A stretch of DNA of 64,000 nt, taken from assembly GCA_039096225.1 (NCBI GenBank), contig JBBPEB010000006.1:248001-312000 (forward strand). The letters run 5' to 3'. The stretch is from Blastocystis sp. Blastoise (Eukaryota > Protista > Bigyra: Opalinata). Under the pieces are notes generated by a model. It was not told the DNA's origin. It made no database searches and was given only the letters and a program-made list of their open reading frames with translations. The stretch's first letter is position 1, and the number at the start of each line of letters is the position of its first letter. The translations under genes and the position numbers were made by a program. Shown piece after piece: positions 8,758 through 50,349 of the stretch.

Positions 8758-11601
8758 TCAATTCACTAGACTTGGATCAAATTCATCACAAACACCTGTC
8801 TCTTGGATTTTTACTAAACATACAATATAGAATAACAATAGATAGAAATAATAATAATAATAATAATAATAATAATAATAATAATAATAATAATAATAAT
8901 AATAATAATAATAATAATAATAATAATAATAATAATAATAATAATAATAATATACATAATTCAGAAGATGGAGTACTTGTGTTCGTAGAAGTATGTGTAT
9001 TGCGAACAATGCTTCTACGATACGTATATCCAATAATATCACGTTCATGCTTATGATCACTCTTCTCTATAAGAAATTATTAAAGTAAAAAAGAAATAGA
9101 AGAAGACGAGAAGGAATATATATATATATAGAATGATAAAAGTATCTATTCTAATTAAAAGTAATTTTCAAAAAAAAAAAATCATTCATTTATATATATA
9201 CTAAGAATGGGTTGTTCCGTGAATTCATCAAAGTTCGTTGCATACTGACGCACATACTGACGATACATGGGATCATCCGATGGGAGGGTTTGCAACTTTT
9301 GAAGCAAAACACCCAAATACCTATATGTATATTTATTATTATGTTTATTATTATGTTTATTATTATATTTATTATTATTATGTTTCTATTTTATTATTAA
9401 GATTACATTATTAAAAGAAAAATATTCAATAAAATATTATATATATATATATATATATATATATATATACGATGCATTTCTTGGTTGATAAGGAGGTGTC
9501 ACTTTCCAGATATTATCCCAATCAACTCCTCTATATATATATATATATATATATATATATATATATATATATATATATATATATATATATATATACTTGA
9601 GCCATGGATGTGCCATAATTTCTTCCACTCCTTTTCGTCCCATTCGTATGTCTGCTTCACATACTAATTTATTAATAAAATCAAGGCAAAGTGGACTACA
9701 AATACGTCTCATATTATCAGGAAATATGAAATATTGGCGCCAACGACGAATCTTTCTGCATGTACCGACAGCATCATCAGCATAGAAAGGAGGGTAACCT
9801 GCTAACATCTCAAACATAATCACACCTAAAGACCACCAATCACACTATATATATATACAATCATTTAATTATATAATTATAAAAATTAAATATATAGTAT
9901 CTTCTATTATATAACTTTATAAATATAATATATATATATCAAGTATATTTAAAGACTAATATATAGATATATATACTTCTTTTCCATATCCTTTATTAGA
10001 TAATACTTCTGGAGCAATATAATCAGGTGTTCCTACTGCGCTATAAGCTAATTCTCTATTTCTATGCGTACATATAGTATTCACTTTTACTTCTCCTATA
10101 TATATATATATATATATATATATATATATTAAATAGTATAATGAAAGATATTGATCTCTTGAGTATATATATAAATAAAGAATAATGAGTATATATGTAT
10201 ACATATGAATATATAATGAACACTTATATATATATACCTTGGGAATCATCAGTAGTATACATAGATGTATTAGGAATATAATCTTTAGAGAGTTTCTTTG
10301 ATAAACCCATATCAGTTAACTTAATATGACCGTCATAAGTAATCAAGAAATTATCAGGTTTGAGATCTCTATAGACATAATTATTTACAATATAGTATAT
10401 ACAATATTAAATATACAATATTATATATATACAATATTATAAATAAAAAATATAATAAAAAAAAAAAAAATATTAAAAAAATAATATATAATATATATAG
10501 AATATAAAATATAAATAAATAAAAATTTAATATATATAATAAAAAAATAAAAGAAAAATAAAAAATATATATGTATTATTAAATAAAAACAATAAATACA
10601 TAATATCTATTATATATTTATATAAATATAGTATATAATACTCTATACCTATGAATATATCCTTGTTTATGAATACTACTAATTCCTAAGATCATTTCAC
10701 ATATAAAGAATTTAGTAGCTTCCTCGGTAAATATATTTTCTCGAATTAAAAGTCCCATCAGATCACCACCAGCACAAAACTCCATTATCATATATAAATA
10801 ATCTGCATCCTATATATATATATATTAGTATGATAATAATATTCATATAATTTTATAGAATACTATAATAATCACTATTATTTTCATAGAATAATAATAA
10901 TAAAGAATATAATAAATTTAATAATAAAAATAATAATAAAAATATAATAATAATAAAGAATATAATAAATTTAATAATAAAAATAATAATAAAAAAATAA
11001 TAATAATATAAAACAATAATATAATAATAATAATTTATAATATACTTGGAATGAATAATATAGAGTCACTACATATCGTGCATCAGTGAGCGTCATTACA
11101 TCCCTCTCATTCTTTAAACGGTCAATTTAATATATATAATGATTAATAATAACAAAAAGAAGAATCATTTCAATAATAAAACAAATAAACGATCTATCTA
11201 TCACAATCACTAATAATTTTCACAATACATACTTGTTCCTTATCACCAATTTGATCTTTTAACATTAACTTCATAGCAAAAATTTCTCCTGTTTTGATAT
11301 ATCGAACCAGACGAACTTCACCAAAAGCACCTCGACCGACAACACATAAACTTTTGAAATCCTCTAAAGACATCTTCTTACGTACATCTCTTAATAAATC
11401 AGTCTGCTCTTCCTTATAATGTTGTAACTCTTCTTGAATCTGTTCCTGAGACATACTAGACTGTTGAATCTTCTTCTGAAGCTCAATTTGTCTTTTCTGC
11501 ATCAACTCACGATAATCAGTTTTGTTACTTATATACTGTTTGGCTTCTAACGCACGTTTACGGGCAGCCTCAATGACACTACTTGGAATTTGTTCAGACA
11601 T
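8758..11601 (-). CDS. NDR/STK38-family AGC protein kinase; about 10 exons
   Basis: [50 protein letters not shown] and hydrophobic motif IIGYTY. The last small exon (8758-8813) is less certain. Confidence 0.92.
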
Positions 11602-12726
11602 CTCTGTTTAGTTTCTCTATGAATTCTAAAGTGATACAAAGAATTATCTACAACAAAACAAAGACCAAACAGTCTAGATATCCAAAAAGATAAATTTCAC
11701 TTTTTTTCTTAGTTTCTTTTTACAGAAATCCACGTGATATTTCCAGAAAACAATTGTCAATTATTTGTATTTAGCTTCATATATATCATTAATGTAGACC
11801 TATTTTCTATCAAATACTATTCAGATCAATTCGAATACAAAAATAATGATGATTTATGATGATAAAAAAGAAATAATTAAAAAAAATGGTGTTTTTTGTA
11901 TCATCAGCCAACACTTTTCATTAAATTACATATCAGTAAGTATTCTACTGAGTATTTCTTACAACTCTAGTATAGCTATTCATCAATAAACCGATTAATT
12001 GTTAACTGAATCAACTATACATAAGAATCTCATTCACAATAATGTATAAATAGTATACTACATAGAACTGGATACGTCAATTCTAATGAATTTTCAATGA
12101 ATATATATGTGATTAATTGAGCATATAACCTTATTGTATTTTAGCTTTAGAACAATAAACATGCAAATCAGAATATAATCAGAGATACAAGAAAAGCATT
12201 TTGGATATAAAATGATGGCAGTTTAAAAGTAACCCAAAGGATCAACAATGTGATATAGTTGAATCTAGGATCTAAAATTAATTTATATAGTTCTTCATTC
12301 TTTATTCTTTTCATCAAAGTAAAATATAGTATATGAAGTTCATCTTTGACTTTATCTTTAAGAAGATTTCACGAATAATACTACTTTATAATTACTGAGT
12401 TCTAATTATGAAATTCATTCAATAAGTTATTGGTTCATTTTCTGTGATACATTTACTAAAAATACTTCAGTTCACACAATATAGAATAAAAAAGCAAAAA
12501 CAAGGAGAAATCAAATGATCTTTCCTTTCATTGGATAATACCATCAAGAGCCAATAAAATCGTGTAAAATCAGTAAATGGTCGTGTTTATCGAAAATAAC
12601 CGCGAGAATCTCGTTTTTCAATGACGCTTCTGGTGAAATGAAAACCAAACGCCAAAACTTGAATATTTATGGCAACTGTGTATATTTCCTTTTTTACATT
12701 ATTTAGTTGATTTCTAAACATAGAGA

Positions 12727-47946: not shown

Positions 47947-50349
47947 TTACCTATATTGAGGAGACATCGTTTCAAATTTATTCACAAGGAATGGATGATT
48001 CAGAGCATCCTATATATATATATATATATATATATATATATATATATATATATATACTTCACAAGTAATTCGATCTTTCGGCCTCCATTGTAAGCATTGA
48101 AATAAGAAATCCTGAAACTCCACAGGACTATATATATAGTTATATATATAGTTATATATATATATATAATTATATATACGCAATAGGTATTCTCTGTTTT
48201 AAATAGTTTTCAGGTGGAATATCGAGTGTAGTCCCTTTAATAATAATAATAATAATAATAATATATATATATATATATATATATATATATATATACCATT
48301 TTTAAGGGTCATAAAAGGAGTACAGCCGGAAAAGAATTCATTTCGGCGGGTACTTTTATTTAAAATATCCCGCGGGGGAAGACCAAGTGTCTAGACGTAA
48401 TAATAGATAATATATATATAATAATATTAAAAAAATATTTAAAAAAGAATAGAATAAACATAATGAGTAAAAGAAAATATAGTAAAATATATAAATATAC
48501 ATTAATATAAAGAATAATTTGATCTTTTTCGTTTTCTCCTGAAAATATAGGGTATCCAACATATCTATATATATATATATATATAATAAATATTACTAAA
48601 ACTAATAAGTATATTAATGAGTATAATAAATATAAGTATATAAACGATGATAAGTATATAGATATTTCTATATAGATACAATTCGAATAATATGCATCCA
48701 AGTGACCACATATCGATAGGGAATGAGAAGGGGATGCCGAGAATAACTTCAGGAGCACGGTAATATCGACTTTGAATATATACCTGAATCGAGTTCGTCC
48801 CTGCGCGTAGACAACTACCAAGATCGACCGTCTAAGGGAGGTATATATATATATATATATATATATATATATACTTTAACATAACATAGATCACTTTGAT
48901 GGGGAAGTAATAATATATTTTCAGGTTTTAAATCACAATGAACTACGTTCTATATTATTATTATAATAAATAAAAAATTATAAATAATAATATATATATA
49001 TATATATATATATATATATATATATATATATATACAAGTGACTTCAGTAGACACAATGAAATTAATACTTGCTTACAAATAAATTGAATTGTTGGCATAT
49101 CTAAACCCTATAATAATAATAATAATAATAATAATAATAATAATAATAATAATAATAATAATAATAAACATAATAAACATAATAATAATAATAATAATAA
49201 TAATAATAATAATAATAATAATAATAATAATAATAATAATAATAATAATAATAATAATAATAATAATAATAATAATAATAATAATAATAATAATAATAAT
49301 AATAATAATAATATATACTTGAAAGTCTCGTTCCTCTAGAACATTAAATAAGTTTTTCCCCAGAAGAGGGGTCACAATACACAGATGTTCTCGAAAGATA
49401 AATGAATTCTATATATATATATATAAGTATAACTCTATATATATATATATATATATATACAATAACATGGTTAAGACAGTGTGTATTATCGGGATCGGCC
49501 TTATATATCAACTTCATTATCTTCACCTCATTCCATCCCTATACATATATATACATATAATATAATAGTATATAATTTAATATATACTTGTTGAAAGAAG
49601 ACATCACCTCGTCGAATGATTTTAATAGCTATATATCGTCGACTTTTATAATCATAGCATTTCATCACTTGACTAAAGGTACCATTTCCCAACTTAGACA
49701 CAATCTCATATCGATATCTATATAGAATAATAAACATAATAATGATAATAATAATAATAAATGTTAATAATAATAATAATAACAACATAATAATCATATT
49801 AAACATAAACATAATAATAAACAAGAGAATAATAACATAATAAACATAATATATACGCAATTTGATCCCCTGGGGAGAATGTATATAAACCGTCAGGAGT
49901 ATCATAATCAGTCATCACTTTACCATCAATTTTATGTCCACGACGTCCCTATAAAGATATTCATAAATATAAATAATTTAATTCTAAAAATAAACAAATA
50001 AGCAAATATATATAATATAAAATAGACATACAGTAAAGTATATTGTTGTATAATTCTGGATTTCCAATTTTTCAAACGCTGTGAGAACGTATCTGAATAT
50101 ATCAAAGATTATAGAGTTTTTGTGATAAAGTAAAAGAAAATTAAACTATCAATATAATGAAAAAAAATACGGAAAATTATCTAGAATGAACTGAGGAGTC
50201 ACAGATGTATTTTCATTCGATTGTGCTAGTGGTGCTGCCCAATAGTCTTTTACAGTCCCATTTGGCTTTCCTCCGCTTGCTGACTGATCTATATGTGAAT
50301 AGTAACTTGTTGTATCTCGAAGCTTACTGTTTACAGGTATGCTATTCAT
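47947..50349 (-). CDS. DYRK-family (class 2-like) protein kinase; about 13 exons
   Basis: [73 protein letters not shown] and IDMWSLGCI. Confidence 0.9.

Follow-up and report, generated by a model that had tools for sequence, protein, structure and literature searches.

A stretch of 64,000 nucleotides from the tortoise-gut protist Blastocystis sp. Blastoise (contig JBBPEB010000006.1, positions 248,001 to 312,000; the whole of it is called the window in the following) carries three tracts that consist solely of GT, a run of AT dinucleotides and AG. They interrupt the genes for an NDR/Cbk1-type kinase, an RTEL1/FANCJ-like helicase and a DYRK-like kinase, respectively (Table 1). We consider it likely that the three tracts are real major-type (U2-type, GT-AG) spliceosomal introns, and that they lie at old intron positions, where less AT-rich relatives hold ordinary introns of 30-31 nt. 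We infer their splicing from reading frames, stop codons, homology and intron positions that are shared with relatives.

The sequences of the tracts were taken by direct reading of the window and by a regular-expression scan, and their lengths are those of one long-read assembly. A preliminary description of the window, made from its letters alone, had presented the three introns as GT, an AT run and AG only, lacking both a polypyrimidine tract and a YTRAY-like branch motif. The composition is exact in the window letters, with no G or C in the interior of any of the three, and the motif scan bears out the missing signals: no pyrimidine run exceeds 1 nt, a polypyrimidine tract before the 3' AG is absent, and not one YTRAY motif was found, whether 8-45 nt from the 3' end or elsewhere in the three tracts. 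The flanking peptides that had been given (HPWLK|GVDW, DDQ|LLF and ITCE|DALNHPF) are likewise correct. The GC content of the window is 22-33% in 2-kb steps; the window lies on contig 14 of a genome of 33.34 Mb (34 contigs, ~24% GC). For a peroxiredoxin ORF, the best relatives with a name are two proteins of Blastocystis sp. Blastoise (67% and 65% identity). Two sequencing runs share words with this DNA, a poly-A gut metatranscriptome (X2, share 0.32) and a run of unclear type (X1, share 0.66).

The comparison with homologs was made exon by exon and by reference, not over a joined spliced model, and the helicase gene model was used only where frames or homologs agree. For all three tracts, removal exact to the base restores collinearity with the homologs. 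Two of them (32 and 48 nt) need to be removed for a full-length protein, because the first shifts the reading frame and the second introduces an in-frame TAG. Across the 32-nt tract the frame changes from 2 to 1, and this agrees with the earlier statement that 32721-32752 must be taken out to keep the frame. The exon before it aligns with human FANCJ (614-645) through the last exon residue, and the exons on its two sides abut exactly in five RTEL1-like homologs (e.g. at 144|145 in P0366). The only alternative in-frame donor, at 32703, was rejected, as its use would remove residues that are aligned to FANCJ. Reading through the 48-nt tract gives ITCE and a (YI) run, after which a TAG follows in frame ahead of the conserved ALNHPF, so that this tract has to be removed as well, a point on which the preliminary description was silent; in the spliced reading, RIT and AL.HP are exactly as far apart as in six DYRK homolog loci. 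The frame of the NDR gene (9844-9440) continues through the 66-nt tract and gives HPWLK(YI)nRGVDWDN without a stop. In the alignments with PDB structures, the segments before and after the (YI) block meet at a single residue (424 in yeast Cbk1, 342 in human MRCK), and the block of 22 residues is unique to the window and missing from all nine aligned homologs.

Two contigs provide the shared positions. The standout match to the last large helicase exon in a word search (P0318, 219 bits against 157 for the next) belongs to L036, an ENA metagenome contig (7.4 kb, 36% GC) along which the helicase exons of the window are collinear. At L036:3878-3908 this contig has a 31-nt intron of mixed sequence, phase 0, between PNQ and LLFRV, whose position and phase are those of the 32-nt tract; the introns that flank both are common to the two genes as well, with 33 and 34 nt in L036 versus 89 and 69 nt in the window. 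A relative of the NDR exon (P0429, 70% identical) is encoded on a 6.3-kb contig of 38% GC, L037, where a 30-nt intron that starts with GTAAGT (1367-1396, phase 2, WLK / DVDWDN) has the position and the phase of the 66-nt tract. The intron after the following exon (9470-9530) is also common to L037 (1457-1488, 32 nt), and the 30-nt intron L037:970-999 is probably the counterpart of the window intron 10237-10096. The introns of both relatives are of mixed sequence, with T-rich stretches. Because the relatives hold ordinary introns of 31 and 30 nt in the same position and phase, the helicase and NDR intron positions are older than their (AT)n content. No NDR paralog was found in the genome that would allow a comparison of intron positions within it, and the GC-rich contigs (59-65%) that were tried as further NDR relatives (L025-L027) proved to be non-Blastocystis and uninformative.

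Table 1. Pure and near-pure introns of the window and the exons that adjoin the pure introns
Feature	Positions	Strand	Description and evidence
NDR kinase exon, 3' of 66-nt intron	9470-9530	-	Starts (K); homolog alignment; adjoining intron begins GT(AT)n at 9469
Pure intron, NDR/Cbk1-type kinase	9531-9596	-	GT(AT)31AG, 66 nt, phase 2; HPWLK / GVDWDN junction
NDR kinase exon, 5' of 66-nt intron	9597-9844	-	CDWWSLG...HPWL(K); open frame; PDB kinase matches; 70% identity to P0429 exon (L037)
Near-pure intron, helicase	31854-31917	+	64 nt; GT(AT)15AG, 17 mixed bases and a (TA) run ending TAG; frame; TA-run share 0.69
Helicase exon	32627-32720	+	(S)GTLSP...VIKDDQ; FANCJ alignment, RTEL1-like homologs, L036
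Pure intron, RTEL1/FANCJ-like helicase	32721-32752	+	GT(AT)14AG, 32 nt, phase 0; VIKDDQ / LLFRVV junction
Helicase exon	32753-32811	+	59 nt; orthologous exon of L036 (3909-3967) also 59 nt
DYRK-like exon, downstream of 48-nt intron	47953-48009	-	Homolog spacing
Pure intron, DYRK-like kinase	48010-48057	-	GT(AT)22AG, 48 nt, phase 0; RITCE / DALNHPF junction
DYRK-like exon, upstream of 48-nt intron	48058-48127	-	Homolog spacing
Near-pure intron, DYRK	48128-48179	-	52 nt; TA-run share 0.85
Near-pure intron, DYRK	48832-48874	-	43 nt; GT(AT)n and a short C/T tail before AG; TA-run share 0.74
Near-pure intron, DYRK	49409-49460	-	52 nt; TA-run share 0.77

The pure introns were then compared with the other introns of the same genes, in a set of 26 introns from the NDR, helicase and DYRK genes, eight of which were checked by frames or homologs. 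All 26 start with GTA, 19 of them with GTATAT, and 17 end with TATAG; their mean GC content is 11% and their length varies from 32 to 280 nt. The share of the intron that is taken up by TA runs goes from 0.03 to 0.97 in a gapless range. A YTRAY motif is absent altogether from 11 of the 26 introns and is not found 8-45 nt from the 3' end in 17 of them, and thus the lack of a branch motif and polypyrimidine tract, though true of the pure introns, is not peculiar to them. The pure introns are the extreme of a continuum, and the weakness of internal signals is a genome-wide property. A near-pure intron of the helicase gene illustrates the gradation: its first 34 nt (31854-31887) form a complete GT(AT)15AG, which we rejected as the whole intron since splicing at AG 31887 meets a stop after nine codons, whereas the frame needs 31854-31917. 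This AG would therefore be a decoy, and the required AG is not in every case the first one downstream of a TA run, unless unproductive products are made in addition.

Alternating TA makes up ~4.8% of the window, and the GT(AT)nAG string as such is not over-represented (G..G or C..C flanks, 5 observed against 7.4 expected; 6 against 6.9; independent flanks). The placement of the tracts is a different matter. A census over 264 kb (the window and 200 kb of the same contig) gave 101 TA tracts with a minimum length of 20 nt. Of the eight that are bounded by GT..AG, three are directly embedded in coding sequence with compatible phases, versus two of the 93 others (Fisher p = 0.003), and at least one of the latter pair belongs to a near-pure DYRK intron as its long 5' TA run. 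Elsewhere on the contig, G000:C14:459183-459230 (+), equivalent to L010:9183-9230, is a GT(AT)22AG of 48 nt in phase 0 on which read-through meets TAG; it is likely a fourth pure intron, in a gene for a Tyr/Pro/Asn-rich protein. The same gene contains a 36-nt TA tract after SYPYS (L010:8884-8919, +) that is not preceded by GT (ATTC|TATATA), and which may represent an intron whose 5' end is not GT, or else a misread exon.

Some points weigh against the reading of the tracts as introns at old positions. The larger part of the intron set (18 of 26) comes from a rough gene model, and NDR introns 1 and 2 were adjusted manually with L037 as the guide. Both relatives are metagenome contigs, which are Blastocystis-like on three grounds: clear best matches, shared intron positions and introns of 30-34 nt. 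For the DYRK gene, a scan of JGI metagenomes recovered distant homologs only, intronless in the region concerned, and no close relative. Finally, the 66-nt tract is in frame and stop-free, and an isoform that retains it, with a (YI)n insert, is possible.

The genome appears to encode an ordinary splicing apparatus. U1 snRNA is present with the 5' end AUACUUACCU, U2 snRNA is present with its branch-pairing GUAGUA kept, and U6 snRNA is present; the SF1 helix-hairpin (SF1-HH) domain scores over its cut-off; and a U2AF2-like gene (G000:C26:206099-207800, -, corresponding to L032) encodes three RRMs, an RP.DY linker and a C-terminal UHM-like RRM. The preliminary description had advised a look at U2AF2, SF1 and the branch-pairing region of U2 for divergence. 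The pairing sequences of U1 and U2 are canonical, and the genes for SF1 and the U2AF2-like protein are retained. Compensating changes in U1 or U2, of which there is no sign, were rejected. The U2AF2-like gene is itself interrupted by low-complexity, AT-rich introns.

On these grounds a simple scheme may be proposed for the origin and the recognition of the pure introns. The usual splice sites of the lineage are GTATAT... and ...TATAG, and replication slippage could extend (TA)n runs inward from both intron ends, with length changes of two bases being neutral because the intron is removed; in the extreme case a single TA run would come to occupy the entire intron. The graded TA share and the genome-wide weakness of signals fit such a spread of (TA)n from TA-rich splice sites. 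All that is left in a pure intron is GU at the start, AG at the end and A/U in between. Its AG has no competitor, because it holds the first G after GU; the branch adenosine might be chosen among the many A's by position and not by motif; and the intron might be recognised by its shortness and its A/U richness relative to the GC-richer exons, by a spliceosome that is otherwise ordinary.

The preliminary description had gone further and regarded each pure intron as a self-complementary hairpin that brings its splice sites together, with reference to a precedent in fish, which exists as cited (PMC4691745). Splicing would then depend on structure, the (UA)n hairpin joining the splice sites and replacing the recognition of branch site and polypyrimidine tract as in fish, where this was shown by experiment. 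Folding into A-U hairpins is indeed predicted for each of the pure introns, at -36.3 (66 nt), -12.1 (32 nt) and -20.6 (48 nt) kcal/mol, and a need for the hairpin would explain why a spliceosome that once measured out 30 nt tolerates TA expansions in particular, given that the relatives keep ~30 nt and lengths here are 32-280 nt. A working role of the hairpin is another matter. Against dinucleotide-preserving shuffles the z-score is -5.0 for the 66-nt intron and only -1.3 and -2.0 for those of 32 and 48 nt, the centroid structures of which are open, and the predicted stems consist of A-U pairs only, in many registers. Moreover, long TA runs at the 5' end do not go with long ones at the 3' end (Spearman rho 0.05, p 0.83; 23 non-pure introns, a small sample that leaves room for a helping role), many introns have a TA run at a single end, the stem would conceal the GU and the AG, and both SF1 and the U2AF2-like gene are retained. 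In these models a required hairpin is unsupported, and we regard splicing of this kind as unlikely.

A related and about equally doubtful possibility is that the (UA)n run is itself the splice signal of the lineage, by pairing with U1, with U2 and with itself. By inspection, positions +1 to +3 and +6 to +8 of GUAUAUAU can pair with the canonical 5' end of U1, and GUAGUA of U2 can pair with UAU-A-UAU with one bulged A. If such pairings were used, any A/U repeat between a GU and the first AG would be excised at whatever length, and a spliceosome once fixed at 30 nt would be freed from that length. Sloppy or non-GT ends and new introns inside TA tracts might also arise, and the window has one GT..AA case, which is described below.

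A coding function can be considered for the 66-nt tract, which might sometimes be kept and translated as (YI)n in the NDR kinase; for the other two tracts it does not apply. The length of 66 nt is divisible by 3, read-through meets no stop, and low-complexity runs, poly-N among them, abound in the proteome. The tract is bounded exactly by GT and AG, however, an insert would break the conserved HPW..GVDW junction, at which none of the nine homologs has an insertion, and L037 carries its 30-nt intron exactly at this site, which makes this explanation very improbable.

Slightly less probable still is the birth of these introns from a microsatellite, as had been put forward in the preliminary description, in which a plain exonic (AT)n gains a G at each end and becomes a new intron. 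GT(AT)nAG is but two substitutions away from (AT)n, TA tracts are plentiful in the window, and several of the NDR introns found here are missing from L037, so that intron turnover does occur in the group. This last point concerns introns 11127-11232, 10810-11045, 10369-10648 and 9845-9976 (all -), for which L037 has one open frame; they were either gained in this lineage or lost in the other. For the helicase and NDR introns the birth idea is refuted, since these two of the three positions are filled in relatives by ordinary introns of 31 and 30 nt (L036:3878-3908 and L037:1367-1396). In addition, the 264-kb census recovered no long TA tract without GT..AG ends that lies in frame within an otherwise continuous exon, and a precursor (AT)n in an exon would have had to place (YI)n within kinase and helicase motifs that are highly conserved.

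Least credible is an artefact of the assembly, in which low-complexity sequence was collapsed, expanded or wrongly polished and the true introns hold other bases: the assembly is long-read based (PMC12129017) and dinucleotide runs are liable to length errors, but such errors mostly alter length and not composition, in each of three separate genes the exons have clean edges and the tract can be taken out exactly to the base, a fourth such case is found 150 kb away, and a gradation is seen among near-pure introns that retain a short unique core.

Several other features of these genes were noted. The first NDR intron (11127-11232, -) apparently ends with AA instead of AG. The L037 ortholog is uninterrupted here (VEHIRAERDVMT..LYYTFQ), a match of the window to it needs an exon start at 11126, right after TATTAA, and no in-frame AG acceptor is available for this intron. 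An A-rich repeat that includes 10471-10532 is located within another NDR intron, and a long repeat occupies 8847-8952 of the window. In the helicase gene, intron 31642-31766 (+) has an apparent GC start at the head of a TA run (DKQ|GCATATAT); it is possibly a GC-AG intron, because, given the frame and the next exon, other donors would drop conserved-looking residues. The apparent C-terminal tail of the helicase contains an in-frame (AAT)n run (33954-34063, +) that encodes ~37 consecutive asparagines, and microsatellites thus enter coding sequence as well as introns in this genome. Outside of the three genes, a selenocysteine tRNA was found at 24975-25060 (-; Rfam RF01852, 72 bits against a gathering score of 47).

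In the literature that was searched we found no description of such (TA)n-only introns. If RNA data confirm that they are spliced, they would be natural introns at the minimum: GU, an information-free A/U repeat and AG. Branch placement could then be tested where every A is equivalent, in the presence of canonical U1 and U2 pairing, SF1 and U2AF2, and the same would hold for the shortest and longest run that is accepted and for the help or hindrance that comes from self-pairing. The change from mixed introns of ~30 nt to introns of free length that are overwritten by a microsatellite would be dated within one genus, and would connect intron structure with mutation bias, here extreme AT content and slippage. 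In practice, such tracts are handled poorly by gene finders and read aligners, and this may add to the low BUSCO scores reported for tortoise isolates.

Within the genus, the portions of PMC12129017 on which we draw report that nearly all introns of the human Blastocystis subtypes are exactly 30 bp long and that tortoise isolates have longer and more variable introns and ~12% low-complexity DNA; these portions do not describe intron composition. The introns of the window resemble the ~30-bp introns of ST1, ST3, ST4 and ST7 in being GT-AG, very short and started by GTA. Two of the three pure introns share their position with 30-31-nt introns of Blastocystis-like contigs, and the 32-nt one is in the same size class. 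Unlike in the human subtypes, length is free here (32-280 nt) and the interior may be one dinucleotide repeat. Minor (U12-type) introns are numerous in Blastocystis (Gentekaki 2017; Larue and Roy 2023, PMC10639083) and are short as well, but the pure introns start with GTATAT and have neither the ATCC core that marks a U12-type 5' site nor the U12-type branch motif. An assignment to this class was rejected, as the pure introns (GTATATAT...) have neither an RTATCCTT 5' site nor a TCCTTAAC-like branch site and contain no C at all.

The (AC)m-(GT)n introns of zebrafish and other teleosts, in which the repeats are needed and splicing is independent of U2AF2 by experiment (Lin et al. 2016, PMC4691745), are similar in that repeats lie beside both splice sites, the branch site and polypyrimidine tract are hidden and pairing across the intron is predicted. 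In fish, the introns are longer, and AC and GT runs co-occur above chance at their two ends, separated by unique sequence (PMC4691745). Here, complementarity of the two ends is trivial, as (UA)n pairs with itself, and a co-occurrence of 5' and 3' repeats is not seen among the 23 introns compared (rho 0.05). One self-complementary repeat makes up the whole intron, and its predicted A-U-only stem would include the GU and the AG.

For plants, Goodall and Filipowicz reportedly found in 1989, with designed A/U-rich introns in plant cells, that introns are recognised mainly by their A/U-rich content. The likeness to the window lies in A/U-rich introns (11% GC on average here) next to GC-richer exons, and in branch-site and polypyrimidine signals that are weak or absent, although natural plant introns are not known to be pure dinucleotide repeats. 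By analogy, Blastocystis may use a plant-like logic of A/U richness.

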